From the NCBI GenBank assembly GCA_020536535.1, contig JAHLWZ010000792.1:153031-217030 (forward strand): a stretch of DNA of 64,000 nt, written 5' to 3'. The translations under genes and the position numbers were made by a program. Under the pieces are notes generated by a model. That model worked only from the letters and a program-made list of their open reading frames with translations, ran no database searches and was not told where the DNA came from. This document shows, one piece after another, positions 18,729-64,000 of this stretch (its first letter is position 1; the number at the start of each line of letters is the position of its first letter). The DNA is from Pelomyxa schiedti (lineage: Eukaryota; Protista; Evosea).

Positions 18729-20758
18729 TCAAAAATCGTCTTGCTCATATTGTTCATGGTCGGGGTTGTAGCCTTCACCATCCAGGTTGCTTTTGACATC
18801 ATCGTCAGGGGGTGGGGATGTTGGTTCTCCTGATGGGCCTTTGCCTTTGCGAGGGGCTTTCTTCACTTTGGGTGGCTGTGGAGGGCGCTCCTCTGCAACG
18901 AGGCCGGCCTCTTCATAGCGGTGATTGAGTTCGTCTAGTGTTATAAACCTGGATGTGGGTTGTTGGGATTTTACGAGATTATTTCGGGCATTTTACCCAA
19001 GGGAAAATAGCTCTTCAAGGTGGTCCATTTCTTCTGTCATGTCTGAAGGGTTGACAGGAAGGGAGTGGGAAACTGGGAGTGCTGGCTCTGGATGGAAATA
19101 AACTTCCTGTTCAAAGGCACCCTAAAAGATTTTAAAGAAAAAAGGTAGGATAAACTGAATGACCTCCGGTATTAGACATGATTCAATATCAGCTTCCTCA
19201 ACCCCAAGCAACTGGGATAATGTGGAATTTGATATAGTCAATACTGACACTTCTGGAGAATCACTGGGAGGAGTAAATAAAATCCAATATCAATGAATAA
19301 CGAAAGATGTCGCACCGGAAAGTGGTTTCTCCAGTTATGGTCTCCCACATGGCCTCTTCATCATAGTCTTCCGCAGGCACACTTTCGTGTGGAAGTGAAG
19401 AATACAGGAGAATTTCATCTTCAGTCGCTTTTCGTGGCTTTTCAATAACCTGAACATTTGTATTGTAAGGCAGGTGCTGGCTAGCCAAGGCTTACTTACA
19501 CGGAAAGTCTTAAGATAAACCCAACATGGTCCCACAACAGTGCTAACTTCACCAGAAACTGTGTTGATGAATTTGGCACAATCCCCTTCAACCACATGAA
19601 CTTTATCCCGATAGACCTGTAGTTGGCAGTTATACAACTTACTCTTTAAATTAATGAGACACACAACAGAGCGGGCCTCTCTCGTCTGCTTATTTTTATG
19701 ATGCTTCTTCCTGCGCAACCTTGGCATGGAATAGAATTGGTAATTTTCCATTTCAATTCGCTCCAAAGCTTCTCTTTCTCTTTGTTCCCGAAGCATTTTC
19801 CCCAACTGTACGCATAGCTCCTCAACTTCAGCCTATTTCTGGGTTAAAAAAAAAGAACAAACTAAACTTGGAGGAAAACGAACCTTGTTTTTGCGGAAAA
19901 TATGATTCCACTTGCACACATGGGATGCCTTATATTCATCATCCAGCCTCTGAATCTCTTCCAACTCTTCTGGTGATGGTTTCTAGGGAAAAGATTAAGT
20001 TCCAGGTTACTGACAAGGTGCATACCGTAAGGAAAGAATGAACCCTGGGCCTCCGCTGCCGACCGGGCTCCGTGGCTCTTTTGCGAGGGCGGGGTGCTTT
20101 TGAATGATAAGGTACATCTTCCTTTGGAAGAGCAGCCTCTCTTCTCCAATCCGCGAGCTAATTCTCTTTGTAAGAGAAGCAACAATGAGTATAAAACTAA
20201 CTGCTTTGGCCTCAGAAACTGTGAGTCTCATGTCATCAGCTGGGGCAGCCATTTCTTCTGAGTCCCTGGTAACTGGCAAACTTCTTTTATACATTTTTTC
20301 AATGAGTTTGTTTGGCTTGTGGGTGCCCTTGTACATGGCAGCTTGGTGGGCAGCACGCCTATTTGCCACAGTGTTGGATTTTATTTGTTCTCTAAAATTC
20401 ACATACGCTTCTTCCTTTCGTTTCAAAATACGAGCGTAATCGTATTTCCACATATCAGATGAAAAGGGCACCATAAAAACGCTACAGCCATTAGCTTTAA
20501 GTAAATAAAATACACAAGGTACCCAGTGAAGTTGCGTCTTCTGAACTTTTGTGCGTCCTCATGAACAGCCCACACGTTCACACCATCACAGGCCACGACA
20601 ACGGCCGGAGAACCAGACACGCGTATAGGATCCCCTGTTCGCAACAAATGTTAAAACCCTACGAGGCAACGAGATCTAGATGACGTTTCTTTGTGTTGTT
20701 TGTAGGGAGGTGTCGCAATACCGGGTCGGACCATGTGGTGCTTCGGTGTGTCTGTCAT
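18729..20758 (-). CDS. Hypothetical protein (multi-exon)
   Basis: Spliceable open exons from MTDTPKHHMVRP|GDPIRVSGSPAVVV, through a charged helical region (REQREREALERIE), to an acidic end EQDDF*. No family recognised. Confidence 0.55.
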
Positions 20759-21303
20759 GATTTCGCTGTCGTTGGTTGGTTTATTTTTTCTTTTTGTTTC
20801 CTTTAAAATGGCACCTTCTTTTTTGTTTGTTGGTGTTCTTCTTGTACTTTATCTCGCTGAGAACGCGTTCCATTTTCGGAATTTCCGATCACTGCGGAAT
20901 CTCGCATCTGTTGGCAGTGGGACAGGCGACACCGTTCCTTCAGAGTGTGTGTTCTGTCAGGAGTGCAAACATTTGGAGCTTTTTGAAACTCCTGATACCA
21001 CATTGTAATCGAGGAAATTGAAAATGCCCCAATAGCCAAAAAGCTATGATGGCTTGCAGACAATTTTTCAGTTTCAGCATGTTCTGTTAACTGAACTTGA
21101 CTGCCACATGTGCCAGAGGTTCGTCGTGAGTTTGGATCTATGAAACAAAGCCGAAAAATCCACGCTACCGAAAAGGAGATCTAAAAGGCCAGGTGGGCGA
21201 AAATAAAGAAACAACAGACAACAAAGAGTGCCCTTCGTCGCTTGTGTAGTTACAACGCGTTCGGCTCCCATAACCGAGACACACACAACTCCTCGTTGAG
21301 TAA

Positions 21304-24300
21304 ATGATGATGGACGCGGCCAGGCTACAACAGCAGCTGTCAGTCAGCCACAAGAGGACGGCCTCGGACTCGCCGTCGCCCACGTCGCCGCCCCCCATGC
21401 TCATGGGGGCCCCGGAGCCCCCCCCGCCCGCCACCAGCGCGCCCATGCCCTTCCCCATCCGCTGCGCCCCCTCGTCCCTCTCCGAGCAGGCGCTGCTCTC
21501 GCCCTCCTCCCCGCACGGCGGCCTCGGCGGCGGCGTGTGGGGCGGCGGGCACCTGCACCACCTCCACCAGCTGCACGGCCACGGGCCGGGCAGCGGCTGG
21601 GGCGGCGGCTACGACGACGACTACATCCCGCCGCCGACGACGCCGGCGCCGCTGCCGCTGGTCACGCCGTTCCACTCGTCGCCCAACCTGGCGGCCCACA
21701 TCCCGCCGCCGCCCATCCCGCCCGGCTGCCCGTCGCCGACCGTCGGGGGCACGGCCACGCCCCCGCTGTCCACCAGCGGGCAGCTCCCGCGGCGCCACCA
21801 CCGCCCCGCCGCGTCCTACTCGGGCTCCATGTCGCCGGTGTCCGCGTCGGTCCCGCGGCCGCCGGGCTCGGGCCACTCCAGCTCCATGTCCAACTCGGGG
21901 GGCTCCGCGACGACCTCCTCGCGGCCCACCAACATCATCAGCCAGACGTCCGCGTCGGGGGGCAGCCACCACCACCACTCGCACCACCGGCCCAGCAACG
22001 GCACGGGCTCCGCCTGCGCCTCGCCCTCGCAGTCGCCGATCCCCTCGCCCTCGTCGTCGCCCTCCAGCTCCGTGCTGTATGTCATGTCGCCCGCGCCGCG
22101 GCCGCCCCCGCCGCCGCTGCCTTCCGCTTCCAGCCCAATGAACTCGGCGGCTCTCGCGGCTGCACTTTCGGCAGCTTCCGGGGCAACTCCAAATGCAACT
22201 GCAACTGCAAATGCAAATCCAAATGTGAATTCAGGTCCAAATCCAAGTGCACTACTACTGGCATCAATACCACCTTCACCACCTAGAACAACTCGTAAAT
22301 ACTCTTCATCCTTTTCTGCATCTAGTCCAACTCCAGGTTATCTGTGTTCTATGTTTTCTATGTTCTCTCTAACTTAACGTACTTAACTTAACCTAAACGT
22401 TTTGGTTTCCCCTGCAGGTGCCTGGATACAAAAATTTTTCGGAAAAAAGGAACCCCTCATGTCTACTCCTTTAAAAAGAAATGACTTCTTAACCTCCCAA
22501 TCAAGTGCTTTCAATCCTCCTCCTAGCAGTCCCCTCTTTGTCCCTCCCCCATCGACTCCTCCCCCAGGGACCTTGTCTTCTGTACCATCACCCATTCCTG
22601 CTCCCCCAACACACCCTCCTCCACTTTATTATTTACCACCACGGTCATCAACCCGACAAAGGGCCTACACTGACTTTCCACAAACACCATCTACATCCCC
22701 ACCTAATAACAATTCACTTTACCAACCAAATCCAGTTCCAGCACCCCCACCAAGTAATGACATGGTTTACACTCTCCTTTGTGATAAATATGCATGGCCT
22801 TGCCTGCGATACCATACCGCAAAACATTCACCTCACCCTGACGCCTTGTGTGACGTTTCTTTTGCTCATGACTGCACGTCTTCACTGAATACACACTCTT
22901 GCACCCAAGCGTGCAGCAGTAATTCCTCACCAGTTGCATCAACAGCACCTTCTGCTAGCACCAACTTGACACATGTGGAAAATACCACAACTGGGAACAC
23001 AAATAATACGAACGATGATTTCACACGTTACTGTTCTCATGCACTAGAGGACGTTTATTACCGGTATGAAAGCCAGTTATCTTTGAAATTGCGAGAGAAA
23101 GCAATTCGTTGTCGAACAAATATACACATTGCTGTGGTATACTCTCTCTTTTTTTCTTTTACCAATGTAACAGTCGCTCTAAGAAAAGCTTTGTTCTTTG
23201 CCTAGAGATGATGGCAGCAGAAATTGTAAATAGCTTTCTTGTAGCATATCCAGCTTTCACTCCAAAGGTGCAATTTATAAATTTGATTCACATTAGTTAC
23301 CATTCCCCATAAACCAGACAGGAAATGGACTCAGCATTTCCTCTCCAGGTGAAGATTCTCCACAAAGGTTTCTTTTTCAGTTGATGCACAACCTCCTAAT
23401 TTTTGATAGTTTAGCTACAAGTGGAGACCAACGAGATTCCTTTACTGACGACAGGTTTATTTTAGAATAATAAAAAACCTTCCATTCTCACCTAAAGGAG
23501 GGTGGGATCTGATTCTGACGGGAATGATGCTGAAGTACCATCCCCTGTTTATTTTATTTTCTCACCAAACATCCTTTTGTTCCTCCCAGGAGGAATCCCC
23601 TCTCACACGACTCCATCTTGCAACAACTCAGAAAGTGTTAATATGCTCTCCTGGTGTGCCCCTTCATCTATCTGTTCAAGTGTAACTTTCCACAAAAAGA
23701 GTCCATCACATCATCTTGCTCTGTCAAACGAGGTAGCTGCTCAACATCTTTATGCGAATGTGACCAATACTATGGAACAGTTTATGGTTGCTTCCTTCAT
23801 TCTCTTTTAACTTAGTAGGCTTATAATTGTAGGTGGGGTATGTCAAAATTGCGGTCACAGCCCTACTGTCCATGAAAATATGGGCCCTGTTGACAGCATA
23901 TTGAAGAGCACCTCGCAGACCTCTGGGCCGTCTCTTGACGATTTTCCTCTTCCAACAACAACACACTCTGAAAACCGTTTGGCTGTGTCAGACTCTGAGA
24001 TCCGCACATTGTCGATTATCACAAAGCATTCTGCAACACAAAAATCCAATCCGGAACTGGCAAAGGGTTTCTTTATTTGTGTTACTTTTTGTTGACTGAC
24101 CTTGTTTGTAAGCTGATGAGCATTTGTTGGTGTCGCCAGTACCTTCCCTTGCGTCATCGAACCCTGAGCAGCCCTCTCCATTAATACATCAAGTTATCCA
24201 TTGAAACTGTTCATTTATCCAATTCGCCTCACCGACTTGCAGACTTCCATAGATCAAGGAAACCCTAGTCACCAAGTGCCCCGGTCTAGTGATAAAACAG

Positions 24301-59974: not shown

Positions 59975-62076
59975 TCAACAGTAAATCTGTAGCCTCTGAA
60001 CTATGTGGCTTCTGCAAATGGGGCATTGAGTTTTTGTGTAGGAAGCTGAACAGCTACTACACATCACATGCCCACAGGGTACAAACGCAACCTGTGGTGG
60101 CGTAGGCTTCGCCAAACAAAGCGGGCATTCCGCCTTGTTGGCTGACGAAGAAGCTGAGTTCTCTGGGTGGTGATTTCTAGGAGCTGATGGTTGAGGACCC
60201 GGAACTGTGGCTGTGTCTTCAACATACCAGTGTATCTCCGGGAATTGTGACAGGTACTCCGGTTTGGAGAGTTCTGCGAGCAGTGCGTTCTCTTCTGCCC
60301 CCAGAAGAGTGACGCAAAGCTCCAACTTCTCTTTGGTGTCTACGAGAGTATTTTCCTCTGATGGTAATACTTTCCGCCTTCTCATCTTCTTCAGTTCGGC
60401 CTCTACGTCATCAAGTTGGTCTTCAGCCTCCACTCGGCGGTTTCTAACCTGTAGCAAATTTTAGTATTACAGCAAGCATTTCAACAGACTTGGGTGAGCC
60501 GTTCAAGATTGGCTTCAGTTGATTTTTCAACTTGGTGAAAGTGATTGACAAGTCCCTTGAATATATTCAGTTTATCTTCTATCTGTTTATTTGCATTGAT
60601 TTCTCGTTGTGCATCTAACTCAAACTCGTGCATCCTATGCATAGCATCAGTTTTCACTGCCAACGCCCGTTCGGCAATGCTGTTTAGTACACGAATTTCC
60701 TTTTCAAGCAGTTCGTGAGTCCGCTGAATTTGGGTTTCCACCTCTTGGTGCAATTGGGTAAGAGGTTTTGTGAGTCCCACAAGTGTTTCTTGCCCCTGCA
60801 ACAAGGAGTGACCCACAGCGTCAGATGATAAGGGTGAGCCATCGTCACAATTCCGCGACTTCGATAGTAGGTCAAATGCAGCCGAGAGAGCCTGATCTAG
60901 TTCGACTACTGTTGATTTCCGCTGTGAGAGAAGACTAGTGTCCACAGATTTTGACTCCCTGATAGATTTCTGAAATGTATCCAATTTATTTTGCAGAGCA
61001 GATACGTTTTCTAGTGTAGCATCAAGTGCGGCACTGTGTGTGGCCAGTCTGTCGGTTTTCTTTAAGCGACCTGAGGTTGCCAAGTATTTCTCACCCGTTT
61101 GAGCAATATCTTGCAACGTATGAGAGAGGTTACGGCACATTTCTTCTCGGGCAACAGTTTTCTCACTTAAAGTATATTGTAACACACCCAGCGTCTCCAG
61201 TTGATTTGCCACCCCAGTGAGTTTTGCAATGGTTGGCCACACGTTTGGCTGCTGTGCGGGTGTTTGAATAGGGTGACCACTAGCCACTTTAACGAGGTTT
61301 GCACTTGAAGTTGCGATTGTATTTGTGGTAGAAATGGAATGCAATTTGGTGTTTGCAGTTGCAGTAGCCGCAGTTGCAGACGGAATTGGCGTGGCAACAG
61401 AAGAATGTGAATTTGTAGAAGTAGCAGAGTCAACTCTGCTGGGGACTGGCCGCCTCTCAATGTTTTTGAACCACACCAACTCAGGCATCGGTGAGCTCAA
61501 GTGAGCCAGCGTCTTGTCGAAAAGTTCTATTGTTCCATGAATAATCGCGCACGCCGGGGCCGTGTTTGGGTGACTGGCCCTCGCAGTGTAAAAAGTGACA
61601 AAGTTAGAGTCCACGGCGTCGGCGGCAGTCATCGGCACAAACAGTGCCGAAAAGTCGATGAACTTTCGGCGCAGCCCGGCCACGCAGCCCGCGGCGCGGG
61701 CCTGGGCCGCCTCCAAGGCAGCCAGCTCGGCGAGGGAGGCGGCGGCGCCGGGCGCGCACATGGCCTGGCACTCGCGCTTGAGGGCGCCGGTGAGGGAGAC
61801 CAGGGCGGCGGCGGCGACGTCGGCGGCGAGCTGCATGGTGGTGCGGCACTCGAGGGCGTAGCACTGGGGGCCGCGGTTGCCCGCGTCGTGGGTGGCGATG
61901 CCCACGCCGTTGGCCGCCGCGCCGAGGGCGTTGCTGCGCGCGGGGGTGTGGGTGTGCGGCCCGGGGAGGCGCAGCGAGCCGATCTGCGCGGCGATGTGGT
62001 CCAAGGTGGCTGCCTCTGGGAGTACGAGGGTGGTGAATGCCAAACGGGCTACACCCAGGGCTGGCTGGTTGGCCAT
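59975..62076 (-). CDS. Coiled-coil protein with C-terminal C3HC4 RING finger (putative E3 ligase), two exons
   Basis: The 531-aa ORF splices (intron about 60489-60449, phase 0) to an exon ending CPLC...PCGHVMCSSC...CPICRSHIVQRLQIYC*. Confidence 0.85.
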
Positions 62077-62194
62077 CTCGCGGGAACGGGAAAAAGAAAG
62101 GGTTGATAAACTTCACCGAAAAGAACCGGGCAGGACAACAACATCGGAGGCCTCACTACCACAATGGCCCACGATATAATTCATACCAGAGAAT

Positions 62195-62203
62195 AAAAAA
62201 AAA
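62195..62203 (-). terminator. Oligo-T (T9) putative Pol III terminator of the permuted tRNA-Asp unit
   Basis: A9 on the plus strand, about 28 nt downstream of the 5' half on the minus strand. Confidence 0.6.
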
Positions 62204-62231
62204 GAAGCAAGTGGTTGCACTAGGTGAAACT

Positions 62232-62311
62232 AGACATACTACCATTATACTAGCAGAGGAAGGAAAATCCCTCTGCCTGGGAATCGAACCCAGATCGTCT
62301 GCGTGACAGGC
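62232..62311 (-). tRNA. Circularly permuted tRNA-Asp(GTC): 3' half 62311-62269, 9-nt spacer, 5' half 62259-62232, junction 29/30
   Basis: Joining the 5' half to the 3' half gives CCTCTGC-TA-GTAT-AATGGTA-GTAT-G-TCT^GC-CTGTCAC-GCAGA-CGAT-CTGGG-TTCGATT-CCCAG-GCAGAGG-G. This has a 7/7 acceptor stem, 5/5 anticodon stem, 5/5 T stem and G73. Confidence 0.8.
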
Positions 62312-62439
62312 GATGCATCACCACAGTTGTTTGGATTTGTTGTTATGAAGCACTTGCCGAAAGAAGCCCCAGTGAGACGGTTCTTTTTTGGTCTGAAAAA
62401 TACCCGGCAGTGACTTATGGGAGCACACCGAAGAGGGAG

Positions 62440-62446
62440 AAAAAAA
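62440..62446 (-). terminator. Oligo-T (T7) putative Pol III terminator of the permuted TTG tRNA unit
   Basis: A7 on the plus strand, about 32 nt downstream of the 5' half and at an equivalent position to the other copy. Confidence 0.6.
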
Positions 62447-62478
62447 CCACACAGCAAGTGGTTGCACTCGGTGAAACA

Positions 62479-62558
62479 AGCTGTACTTACCATTATACTA
62501 ACAAAGGAGAAAGCCTCCCCTGTCTGGGAGTCGAACCCAGATCTGCCGAGCCAAATTC
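62479..62558 (-). tRNA. Circularly permuted tRNA with TTG anticodon (nominally Gln; His/Asp-like body): 3' half 62558-62516, 8-nt spacer, 5' half 62507-62479
   Basis: Joined sequence CCTTTGT-TA-GTAT-AATGGTAA-GTAC-A-GCT^GA-ATTTGGC-TCGGC-AGAT-CTGGG-TTCGACT-CCCAG-ACAGGGG-A. All stems pair (three G-U in the acceptor and anticodon stems, one more in the D stem). A32 and G37 are atypical for Gln. Confidence 0.65.
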
Positions 62559-62723
62559 GATGTATCACCGCAGCGATGTAGGTTTTATTATTGTGTTATC
62601 CACAGCACTTGCCCGAAAATCAGCTCCCCTGAGCCAAATACTTACTACGACAGCCATTCCCGCACTGCCTTATGGGCCACAAAAAGTCTAATTAATTTTT
62701 GGCTTTTTCTGCGAGTGCTCGAC

Positions 62724-64000
62724 ATGGCAGGAGGTGAATCTTTGCGGGTCGCGGCGTCCGTACTTGCGAACGCGGGATCGAGGCTGGATAAGTGCACAGA
62801 TGAATCGTTCCGCAAGCTATTGGGCTGGGCCGACGTCTTCGATAAAACGGTGCAGTCGGGGGGTGGGGGGTGTCATTGGAGAGCGGGGCGGGGCCGGAAA
62901 TTATTCAGCATCTTGATCTTGATTTTGTTTGTTTGTTCGTTTTGTTGTCTCACTGAGTCGTGGGTTTGTGTGTTCACAGATTCATGGCGGTGGACAAACT
63001 ACTCAGGATGCTGCTGCCAAACAATACAGGAATTTGTTCAAACTTCACCCTGCTTTGAGGTAGTAGTATGCCCCAGACCATAACTAGTTAATTGGTTACC
63101 ATTTATCTTATTAATATTTTGAGGCACGTGAAGTTTGTTTCTATTTAATAGGCAGCTTATTTCTGTACTGGAGTCGCACATAATTAATTTCACAAGAAAC
63201 ATTGACCTTGAGAACTGCACTATGAGAAATGCTATCTTGAAAATCTTACTCAACAACCCAACGATGTCTTGTCATGGACTAGTTCTGGTGATGAAAGAAT
63301 ATTCCAAATCCACTCGAGGAAAAGTTCCTTTGCATGTTGCAATAACTGAGGTAGAACACCTGCATTGTTCCATTTTTTTATAATGCTGTGCAACTTCTAA
63401 CTGCAAAGGACTGTTATCAAACCACCAACCTAGCCTACCAGCTGCACTTTCTGGGTTCCACCTGTGAGAACTACTTGCTCCCCAAGCTCCCTCTTCCCCG
63501 TCAAGAAGACGTTCCGGCAAGTTTGGTACCCGTAGACACACCAACATCGGAGCCATTCGTCACTCCCATGGACTGGGGGAAGGCCAATAGCAGTTCATCC
63601 GCCTTTGGTAAACTGCTTCACAGTGAATTGCATCGACTGGCTGCAAATTACACGTCCAGCCAGGAAGCTTCCCATACTTTACTAGACACATTCGAAACAA
63701 ATCTCACTGAGCAACTCGCAAGTGTTCCTAGAGTGGTATGTACACTCCCAAAGCAAATTTCCCACATCACCACAGTATTGATAACCACCGCACAACAGGA
63801 AATCGCTTGTGTTGCACTCTGCACTGCCTATTCCAGTTCCTTCCCGGAAAACGCAGTTTGCCGTCATATCTATGGGTGCTGCAATATATTAACACGGTGC
63901 TTATGCTCAGCAAGGGAACACCTGTGGCACATAAACAGCCAATTGTTGGAGTGCACTTGCGCCACAAGCACCACTCTCCAAATAGTACGCCTTTGTCCCC
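62724..64000 (+). CDS. Hypothetical protein, weakly FANCF-like N-terminus; runs off the window end
   Basis: MAGGESLRVAASVLANAGS...ESFRKLLGWADVF and ILKILLNNPTMS loosely recall FANCF (RRALQWARY; LLENRAL). Spliceable exons continue downstream. Confidence 0.4.

Follow-up and report, generated by a model that had tools for sequence, protein, structure and literature searches.

Can a transfer RNA (tRNA) gene in which the 3' half precedes the 5' half be a working gene in an amoeba, and how would its transcript be matured? This is asked by a locus of Pelomyxa schiedti that lies near the end of contig JAHLWZ010000792.1 (assembly GCA_020536535.1), in a window of 64,000 nucleotides (nt) of nuclear DNA that comprises the last 64 kb of this contig and to which all positions given here refer. 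A preliminary description had claimed a circularly permuted tRNA-Asp(GTC) gene on the minus strand at 62311-62232 (unit A), and a second permuted unit (unit B, minus strand 62558-62479), absent from that description and corresponding to tRNA-Gln(TTG), has now been found 247 nt upstream of it. Permuted tRNA genes are among the rarest known gene architectures; about 34 are on record, from six unicellular algae and one archaeon, each of them explained by a bulge-helix-bulge (BHB) splicing signal. The reading favoured here, to which a probability of about 0.6 is given, is that units A and B are functional permuted genes of tRNA-Asp(GUC) and tRNA-Gln(UUG), with a new junction, in a new lineage, and with a processing that is not the known one.

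In unit A, tRNA positions 30-73 are followed by a spacer of 9 nt and then by positions 1-29, and every element of the preliminary description is found in the sequence. The upstream half contains the anticodon loop CTGTCAC, a variable loop of 4 nt, the T arm with the B box, which has the textbook form CTGGGTTCGATTCCCAG (CTGGG TTCGATT CCCAG), the 3' strand of the acceptor stem (GCAGAGG), and G73. The downstream half begins with the acceptor 5' strand CCTCTGC and T8 A9, continues with the D arm and its A box (GTAT AATGGTA GTAT), and ends with G26 and T27-C28-T29; the B box thus stands before the A box, as can be read directly in the sequence and as had been stated. When T29 is joined to G30, ARAGORN calls a tRNA-Asp(gtc) of 71 nt with 21 of 21 stem pairs formed, in agreement with the fully paired cloverleaf with a GTC anticodon and G73 that had been proposed. 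The D arm carries G10.U25, and the identity set of yeast tRNA-Asp, which we take to be G73, G10.U25, G34 U35 C36 and C38, is complete.

Unit B has the same order of parts, and its halves, joined at the same 29/30 position, are called as tRNA-Gln(ttg) of 72 nt, again with all 21 stem pairs. At the identity positions, G73 of unit A is replaced by A and U25 by C, and G34 and C36 have changed along with the anticodon. Both units hold U8, A14, R15:Y48, G18G19, A21, U33, R37, G53-C61 and T54-T55-C56-R57-A58, as read from the sequence, and neither encodes the terminal CCA. The junction 29/30 is the only break that yields a fully paired anticodon stem in both of them. Each unit consists of promoter blocks, a leader, positions 30-73, a spacer of 8-9 nt, positions 1-29, a trailer and a T-run. 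The leaders share the consensus CTG-Y-GGTGAT-R-CATC (16 nt) with the core motif GGTGATRCATC, and the trailers, which are followed by the T-run, share W-GTTTCACC-K-AGTGCAACCACTTGC (25 nt) with the motif GTTTCACCNAGTGCAACCACTTGC. The D and T arms are nearly identical in the two units in spite of the different specificity; nearly identical arms in tRNAs of different specificity suggest that one unit arose from the other by duplication and a switch of anticodon and identity, a case of tRNA gene recruitment.

Units A and B are old paralogues, and they were compared as a footprint of selection. Neutral sequence (far-upstream, spacer and post-trailer) is 33-44% identical between the units; identity is 90% in the variable loop and T arm, 84% in the D arm, 81% in the leader, 92% in the trailer, which is the most conserved segment, and 76% in an upstream block of the form CCCATAAG-N-CA-N-TGC. 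Ten stem nucleotides differ between the units, and standard pairing is kept in 10/10. Three pairs have changed on both sides, namely 7:66 (C-G to U-A), 27:43 (U-A to G-C) and 31:39 (C-G to A-U), and two of these, 7:66 and 27:43, bridge the upstream 3' half and the downstream 5' half, so that it is the permuted combination on which selection acts. Over the 31 proposed pairs, 62/62 pair-cells are paired, as compared with 34-55% when the partners are slid. With two sequences the shuffle control is weak (66/500), which is why the argument for selection is based on the contrast to the neutral flanks and on the slid controls. By this comparison, purifying selection acts on the complete permuted cloverleaf, and this extends to the pairs by which the halves are joined.

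That standard tRNA scanners would miss unit A had been predicted, and ARAGORN in default mode indeed reports no tRNA within the window, nor does Rfam give a match in the window at its gathering score, or in the surroundings of the site (61800-63000, both strands) at E<=10. A motif-independent scan, which required in succession a T arm, the 3' strand of an acceptor stem, at most 90 nt of spacer, a 5' strand complementary to that 3' strand over its full length, U8 and a D arm, was applied to 109 kb of P. schiedti DNA out of the 52.4-Mb genome, the part covered by all scans, and returned units A and B only; the control, about 2 Mb of unrelated DNA, gave 3 weak matches, none of them with a matching anticodon arm. 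The pattern of unit A is well above chance. The preliminary description had also proposed a genome-wide search with a permuted covariance model; a covariance model (R1), run together with motif scans on the same 109 kb, found the two adjacent units and no other copies. A tRNA-derived short interspersed nuclear element or another dispersed repeat would be expected in many dispersed copies, and in these 109 kb the copies number two and are adjacent. Conventional tRNA genes were not found in these 109 kb, as is expected at about 1 tRNA gene per 260 kb, the density in the relative Mastigamoeba. The positions of all parts of the two units are given in Table 1.

Table 1. Parts of the two permuted units and of their flanks, with positions in the 64-kb window.
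Feature	Positions	Strand	Basis
Unit A, 3' half: tRNA-Asp(GTC) positions 30-73, 43 nt	62269-62311	-	sequence, ARAGORN
Unit A, spacer ATTTTCCTT, 9 nt, closes the acceptor stem as a loop; contains T4	62260-62268	-	
Unit A, 5' half: positions 1-29, 28 nt	62232-62259	-	sequence, ARAGORN
Unit A, leader ACTGTGGTGATGCATC, 16 nt, pairs with the trailer	62312-62327	-	
Unit A, trailer AGTTTCACCTAGTGCAACCACTTGC, 25 nt	62207-62231	-	
Unit A, T9 run, RNA polymerase III terminator-like	62195-62203	-	sequence
Unit A, A-rich stretch ATAACAACAAAT, -35 to -24 from G30; weak TATA-like element	62335-62346	-	
Unit A, upstream conserved block CTTTCGGCAAGTGCT; contains GGCAAGTG, complementary to the trailer end CACTTGCT	62349-62363	-	
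Unit A, upstream conserved block CCCATAAGTCACTGC, the 76% identical block, promoter-like	62407-62421	-	
Unit B, 3' half: tRNA-Gln(TTG) positions 30-73 with anticodon loop ATTTGGC, T arm, acceptor 3' strand ACAGGGG and A73	62516-62558	-	
Unit B, spacer GGCTTTCT, 8 nt, without T4	62508-62515	-	
Unit B, 5' half: positions 1-29 with acceptor 5' strand CCTTTGT and D arm with G10-C25	62479-62507	-	
Unit B, leader GCTGCGGTGATACATC	62559-62574	-	
Unit B, trailer TGTTTCACCGAGTGCAACCACTTGC	62454-62478	-	
Unit B, T7 run, terminator-like	62440-62446	-	
Unit B, TATA-like element AATAATAAAA, -34 to -25 from G30	62583-62592	-	
Unit B, upstream conserved block TTTCGGGCAAGTGCT	62604-62618	-	
Unit B, upstream conserved block CCCATAAGGCAGTGC	62662-62676	-	
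Unit A, trailer-region end CACTTGCT, reverse complement of GGCAAGTG	62206-62213	-	
Unit B, trailer-region end CACTTGCT, reverse complement of GGCAAGTG	62453-62460	-	

Is there a signal by which the transcripts could be processed? All known permuted tRNA genes place a BHB at the junction of leader and trailer, where it is cut by the tRNA splicing endonuclease. At this junction, a BHB of the strict form (hBHBh') or of the relaxed forms (hBH or HBh') was looked for by hand, and the enumeration of strict and relaxed registers and of the junctions 28/29 and 30/31 gave none that is supported by both units; a 4-bp helix of positions 24-27 with leader positions -5 to -2 can be formed in unit A only. 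Of the permuted-tRNA reading as it had been put forward, the architecture, the GTC anticodon, G73 and the break at 29/30 stand, and the BHB signal of the known family is missing in this hand test. The flanks gave no Rfam match at E<=10 to known ribozymes or other RNA families, and they contain no signals of spliceosomal back-splicing; the leader ends with AUC and not with AG.

What the precursors are predicted to form is a helix of leader and trailer. In the minimum free energy folds of both precursors, this helix, about 10-11 bp long, branches off the anticodon stem precisely at the break, with leader ACUG-U-GGUGA-U-GC pairing with trailer GU-U-UCACC-UAGU in unit A, and leader GCU-G-CGGUGA-U-AC with trailer GU-U-UCACCG-AGU in unit B. 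The duplexes have free energies of -12.5 (unit A) and -16.3 kcal/mol (unit B), with p of about 0.03-0.04 and 0.006-0.01, respectively. In the predicted three-way junction, a single trailer nucleotide and three nucleotides of the leader (AUC) stay unpaired where the helix emerges at the break, so that the two cuts, U29|+1 and -1|G30, would lie at the same helix end, and the excised leader-trailer duplex would be expected to carry a 2-nt 3' overhang.

Further pairings may be formed around this helix. In both units, the upstream block GGCAAGUG (at about -50) could pair with the trailer end CACUUGCU to form a distal stem, with free energies of -11.6 and -13.0 that are modestly better than those of shuffles (p about 0.02-0.04). 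If transcription starts as far upstream as GGCAAGUG, the transcript ends would form a long interrupted terminal stem. In both units, GGCAAGTG in the blocks at 62349-62363 and 62604-62618 is the exact reverse complement of CACTTGCT, the last 8 nt of the trailer region; the two might form a distal terminal stem in a longer primary transcript, or represent a pair of inverted protein-binding sites. The trailers differ by two substitutions only, at +1 (62231/62478) and +10 (62222/62469), and these two positions would be partners (A-U versus U.G) in a small hairpin, C28-U29-N-G / C-N-A-G with the loop UUUCAC, which would account for both substitutions; at about -3 kcal/mol this hairpin is weak, it would compete with the helix of leader and trailer, and it may represent an alternative conformer.

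With regard to transcription, T9 and T7 runs follow the trailers of units A and B, respectively, and each unit has its own conserved upstream blocks; the units are read as separate transcription units. In algal permuted genes, where the A and B boxes are inverted as well, a TATA-like element that lies upstream is believed to serve as the promoter, and such an element is seen in unit B (AATAATAAAA), with a weaker A-rich stretch in unit A. The block CCCATAAG-N-CA-N-TGC is found at 62407-62421 and 62662-62676 of the minus strand, about 100 nt upstream of each unit, and may be a promoter motif of small-RNA genes in P. schiedti that resembles a proximal sequence element. No further exact copies of the upstream blocks occur as a promoter signature elsewhere in the window, and no other RNA polymerase III genes for comparison were found in the P. 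schiedti loci scanned. A scan for bacterial promoters and terminators was discarded as irrelevant, the host being a eukaryote.

How do the units relate to the known permuted genes? They were compared with those of Cyanidioschyzon merolae, Ostreococcus/Micromonas, the Bigelowiella natans nucleomorph and Thermofilum pendens (Soma 2007; Maruyama 2010; Chan 2011; PMC3978253). Like in these systems, the joined halves give a canonical cloverleaf with a sense anticodon and without an encoded CCA, there is a T-stretch downstream and an A/T-rich element upstream, the A and B boxes are inverted, the leader is complementary to the trailer, and the spacers of 8-9 nt lie within the 1-74 nt known for the intervening sequence (PMC3978253). 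In contrast to them, the Pelomyxa junction lies inside the anticodon stem, neither a strict nor a relaxed BHB can be formed, one leader/trailer cassette is common to two tRNA specificities, and the host is a non-photosynthetic anaerobic amoebozoan. The junctions listed in reviews are 15/16, 20/21, 37/38, 50/51 and 59/60 (PMC3978253), and 29/30 would thus be the new permutation type that the preliminary description had taken it for. Its further statement that no report of a permuted tRNA gene from Amoebozoa was known agrees with the hosts named in reviews, which are red and green algae, the chlorarachniophyte nucleomorph and Thermofilum (PMC3978253), and with a 2026 review that places eukaryotic permuted tRNA genes in algae only; among the top-ranked literature results for "permuted tRNA" together with amoebozoan names, the phrase "permuted tRNA" appeared in none. 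Judged from their sequence architecture the Pelomyxa units belong with the permuted tRNA family, but judged by the BHB they do not.

Other interrupted tRNA genes share single traits with the units. In the split tRNA genes of Nanoarchaeum equitans and Caldivirga maquilingensis, complementary flanks form a helix by the break and so unite the pieces, and breaks other than 37/38 occur (PMC4033280), but there the pieces are separate genes that are joined in trans, with a relaxed BHB that is cut by the archaeal endonuclease, whereas the Pelomyxa pieces are in cis, presumably on one transcript, and have no BHB. In tRNA genes with ectopic introns, as in C. merolae, Chondrus, cryptomonad nucleomorphs and Crenarchaeota, the interruption likewise lies outside 37/38 and an anticodon stem has to be rejoined, but in Pelomyxa the halves are reversed and the flanks lack the BHB on which most of those introns depend. 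It is from tandem duplication of such ectopic-intron genes that permuted genes are believed to have arisen.

If units A and B are functional tRNA genes, a pathway can be proposed. Each unit would give one RNA polymerase III-type transcript that runs from an external upstream promoter to the T-run. In the predicted fold, the precursor is a complete cloverleaf, the acceptor stem of which is closed by the spacer loop, and the anticodon stem of which is open between positions 29 and 30. The leader-trailer helix would gather the ends and mark the cuts after U29 and before G30, an endonuclease would remove leader and trailer, and a ligase would seal 29 to 30, resulting in a circular intermediate. 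RNase P and tRNase Z would then open the acceptor loop, and CCA would be added, as in the case of algal permuted tRNAs. As no BHB is possible, cutting has to proceed in another way than in the known permuted genes, and it may be carried out by the splicing endonuclease on an unusual substrate with a three-way junction, or by another nuclease. A specific form of this pathway, in which Pelomyxa, and perhaps the Pelomyxidae, mature tRNAs of permuted genes by BHB-free cuts at the helix base and with a nick-sealing ligase, is a tentative proposal that is judged unlikely. In that model, a leader/trailer cassette common to different tRNAs would place a helix at the break of the anticodon stem, both strands would be cut at the base of this helix with an RNase III-like geometry that leaves a 2-nt 3' overhang, and the nick, splinted by the intact 39-43 strand, would be closed by a nick-sealing RNA ligase.

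Several observations weigh against the assignment of the units as functional tRNA genes. For the central helix of a BHB, positions 24-27 would have to pair with leader positions -6 to -3, which they do at 0/4 positions in unit A and at 1/4 in unit B, and both cut sites lie at one helix end rather than in two bulges 4 bp apart. Pairings of the leader of one unit with the trailer of the other are as stable as those within units, and covariation of leader and trailer, which had been tried as a test for intra- versus inter-unit pairing, was dropped as it does not discriminate; with two known copies that are adjacent to each other, the covariation of leader and trailer is thin. The T4 in the spacer of unit A could terminate RNA polymerase III; this T4, which had been pointed out as a caveat and is indeed present in ATTTTCCTT, is found in unit A only and is not a conserved feature of the spacer. 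C1-G72, present in both units, is unusual for Asp and Gln tRNAs, as are A32, G37 and C38 in the anticodon loop of unit B, and the divergence of that loop would also fit an unconstrained loop.

Some of these points lead to the explanation that competes best, although it is judged unlikely: the units may encode a tRNA-like non-coding RNA polymerase III transcript that is never matured to a tRNA and binds a protein or a tRNA-recognising enzyme. The bacterial YrlA Y RNAs, which their authors described as resembling circularly permuted tRNAs (bioRxiv 10.1101/312249), have the same order of elements, as a terminal stem formed by both ends encloses, one after the other, T arm, closed acceptor hairpin and D arm. 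The terminal leader-trailer helix of the units, the possible distal 8-bp stem that ends in a U-run, and the trailer being the most conserved part would suit such an RNA with a functional terminal stem, as would the lack of a BHB in both units, and the anticodon loop (43% identity) and N73 diverge at about the neutral rate. However, YrlA has no anticodon hairpin, its acceptor stem usually is not 7 bp long, and it is bacterial and linked to Ro60, whereas the Pelomyxa units come from a eukaryote and have a full anticodon arm with a 7-nt loop. The 2-bp inner helix of this arm is doubly compensated (31:39, C-G to A-U), and this compensation, together with the kept U33 and R37, makes sense only if 27-31/39-43 is one anticodon stem. 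With an acceptor stem of exactly 7 bp, U-1, N73 and no encoded CCA, the units also look like good substrates of RNase P and of tRNase Z, and unit A retains all elements of what we take to be the Asp identity set. No Rfam match at E<=10 was obtained to YrlA, Y RNA or another family, and the neighbouring gene Pelo_10208, the 531-aa open reading frame (ORF) of which has no TROVE domain, is not Ro60, although such a linkage would not be expected in eukaryotes.

It is distinctly improbable that the units are non-functional relics, that is, adjacent fragments of decayed tRNA pseudogenes or a rearranged duplicate, complementary to each other by descent. According to a review, it is accepted that permuted genes originate by tandem duplication, there are two adjacent copies only, no BHB was found, and conventional tRNA genes may exist elsewhere in the genome, all of which would fit such relics. 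Decay, on the other hand, is difficult to reconcile with 21/21 pairs in both units at a neutral identity of 33-44%, with the three pairs that changed on both sides in a compensatory manner, two of which bridge the halves, and with the retention of all universal tRNA nucleotides. Separately, the leader and trailer were considered as decayed remains of the missing tRNA halves and rejected, because local alignments were no better than those of shuffles (p 0.5-1.0).

Less probable still is a tRNA-Asp gene of conventional order, made up of the 5' half of unit B (62507-62479), an insert of 167 nt at 29/30, and the 3' half of unit A (62311-62269). When introns are allowed, ARAGORN does report such a gene at 62268-62508 with an intron of 164 nt, the assembly of these two halves is called tRNA-Asp with 20/21 pairs, and the trailer of unit B pairs with the leader of unit A about as well as within units. 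This candidate was rejected since 27:43 is broken in it (G27 x A43) in comparison to 21/21 pairs in both permuted assemblies, since the insert contains the terminator-like T7 run and the conserved upstream blocks of unit A, and since two perfectly conserved, mutually complementary orphan halves with the Gln anticodon arm would remain unused and unexplained. A chimera from whole-genome amplification or assembly that permuted an ordinary tRNA gene is the least credible explanation, as in spite of the chimera-prone method (multiple displacement amplification, MDA, and SPAdes) and a position about 1.5 kb from the contig end, a random chimera would neither recur nor yield compensatory differences, and here two diverged units with different anticodons have the same break nucleotide, conserved leaders and trailers, and their own terminators.

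Searches beyond P. schiedti gave no relatives of the cassette. An exact scan for the trailer core in JGI metagenome contigs returned 40 matches, all of them chance matches in unrelated coding DNA without tRNA context, and a pattern of leader, gap and generic T arm found only chance matches and ordinary phage tRNAs in GTDB genomes and IMG/VR. A leader-like string, GGTGATGCATC, recurs in tRNA clusters of phages (IMG/VR contigs), where the tRNAs are conventional and the string spans the end of the D-loop, the 3' strand of the D-stem and position 26. This recurrence prompted the suggestion, which was rejected, that a relic 5' half is present in the Pelomyxa leader.

Two divergently transcribed protein genes leave a gap of 648 bp (62077-62723), in which both units are located without being covered by a gene model, and a 107-aa ORF that happens to span both units had no match in a protein-index search. 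EF-2, which is also encoded in the window, shares 97% identity with P. schiedti EF-2. The genome paper reports a 52.4-Mb SPAdes assembly from MDA-amplified single cells and nowhere mentions tRNAs. The neighbouring gene Pelo_10208 (60001-62076, minus strand) encodes an orphan coiled-coil/low-complexity protein of 643 aa to which the 531-aa ORF is 96% identical; it has no Pfam domain and no homologue but itself among 5.8 billion proteins, and it has no paralogue, and hence gives no sign of a duplicated locus. Elsewhere in the window, positions 20001-24000 are the stretch with the highest G+C content (51%) and a strongly negative GC skew (-0.18), with long ORFs that overlap on both strands and have no Pfam domain (21304-22377 plus, 21340-21987 minus, 22402-23205 plus), possibly a low-complexity or repeat-rich gene.

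If units A and B are functional permuted tRNA genes, such a pair in a heterotrophic anaerobic amoebozoan would break the link of this architecture with algae, add a junction in the anticodon stem, and demonstrate that a BHB is not needed for the permuted design to persist. It would also imply either that the eukaryotic splicing endonuclease has a range of substrates that has not been recognised, or that there is a different pathway of cutting and sealing. As standard tRNA finders report nothing at the locus, the tRNA inventories of protists may be incomplete, and the same may apply to conclusions on "missing" tRNAs or codon reassignment in these organisms. If the cassette is generic, many tRNA genes of P. 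schiedti could be hidden in this way, invisible to tRNAscan-SE, ARAGORN and Rfam. A common leader and trailer would offer a direct way to track down the other members of the family and to attempt a biochemical reconstitution.

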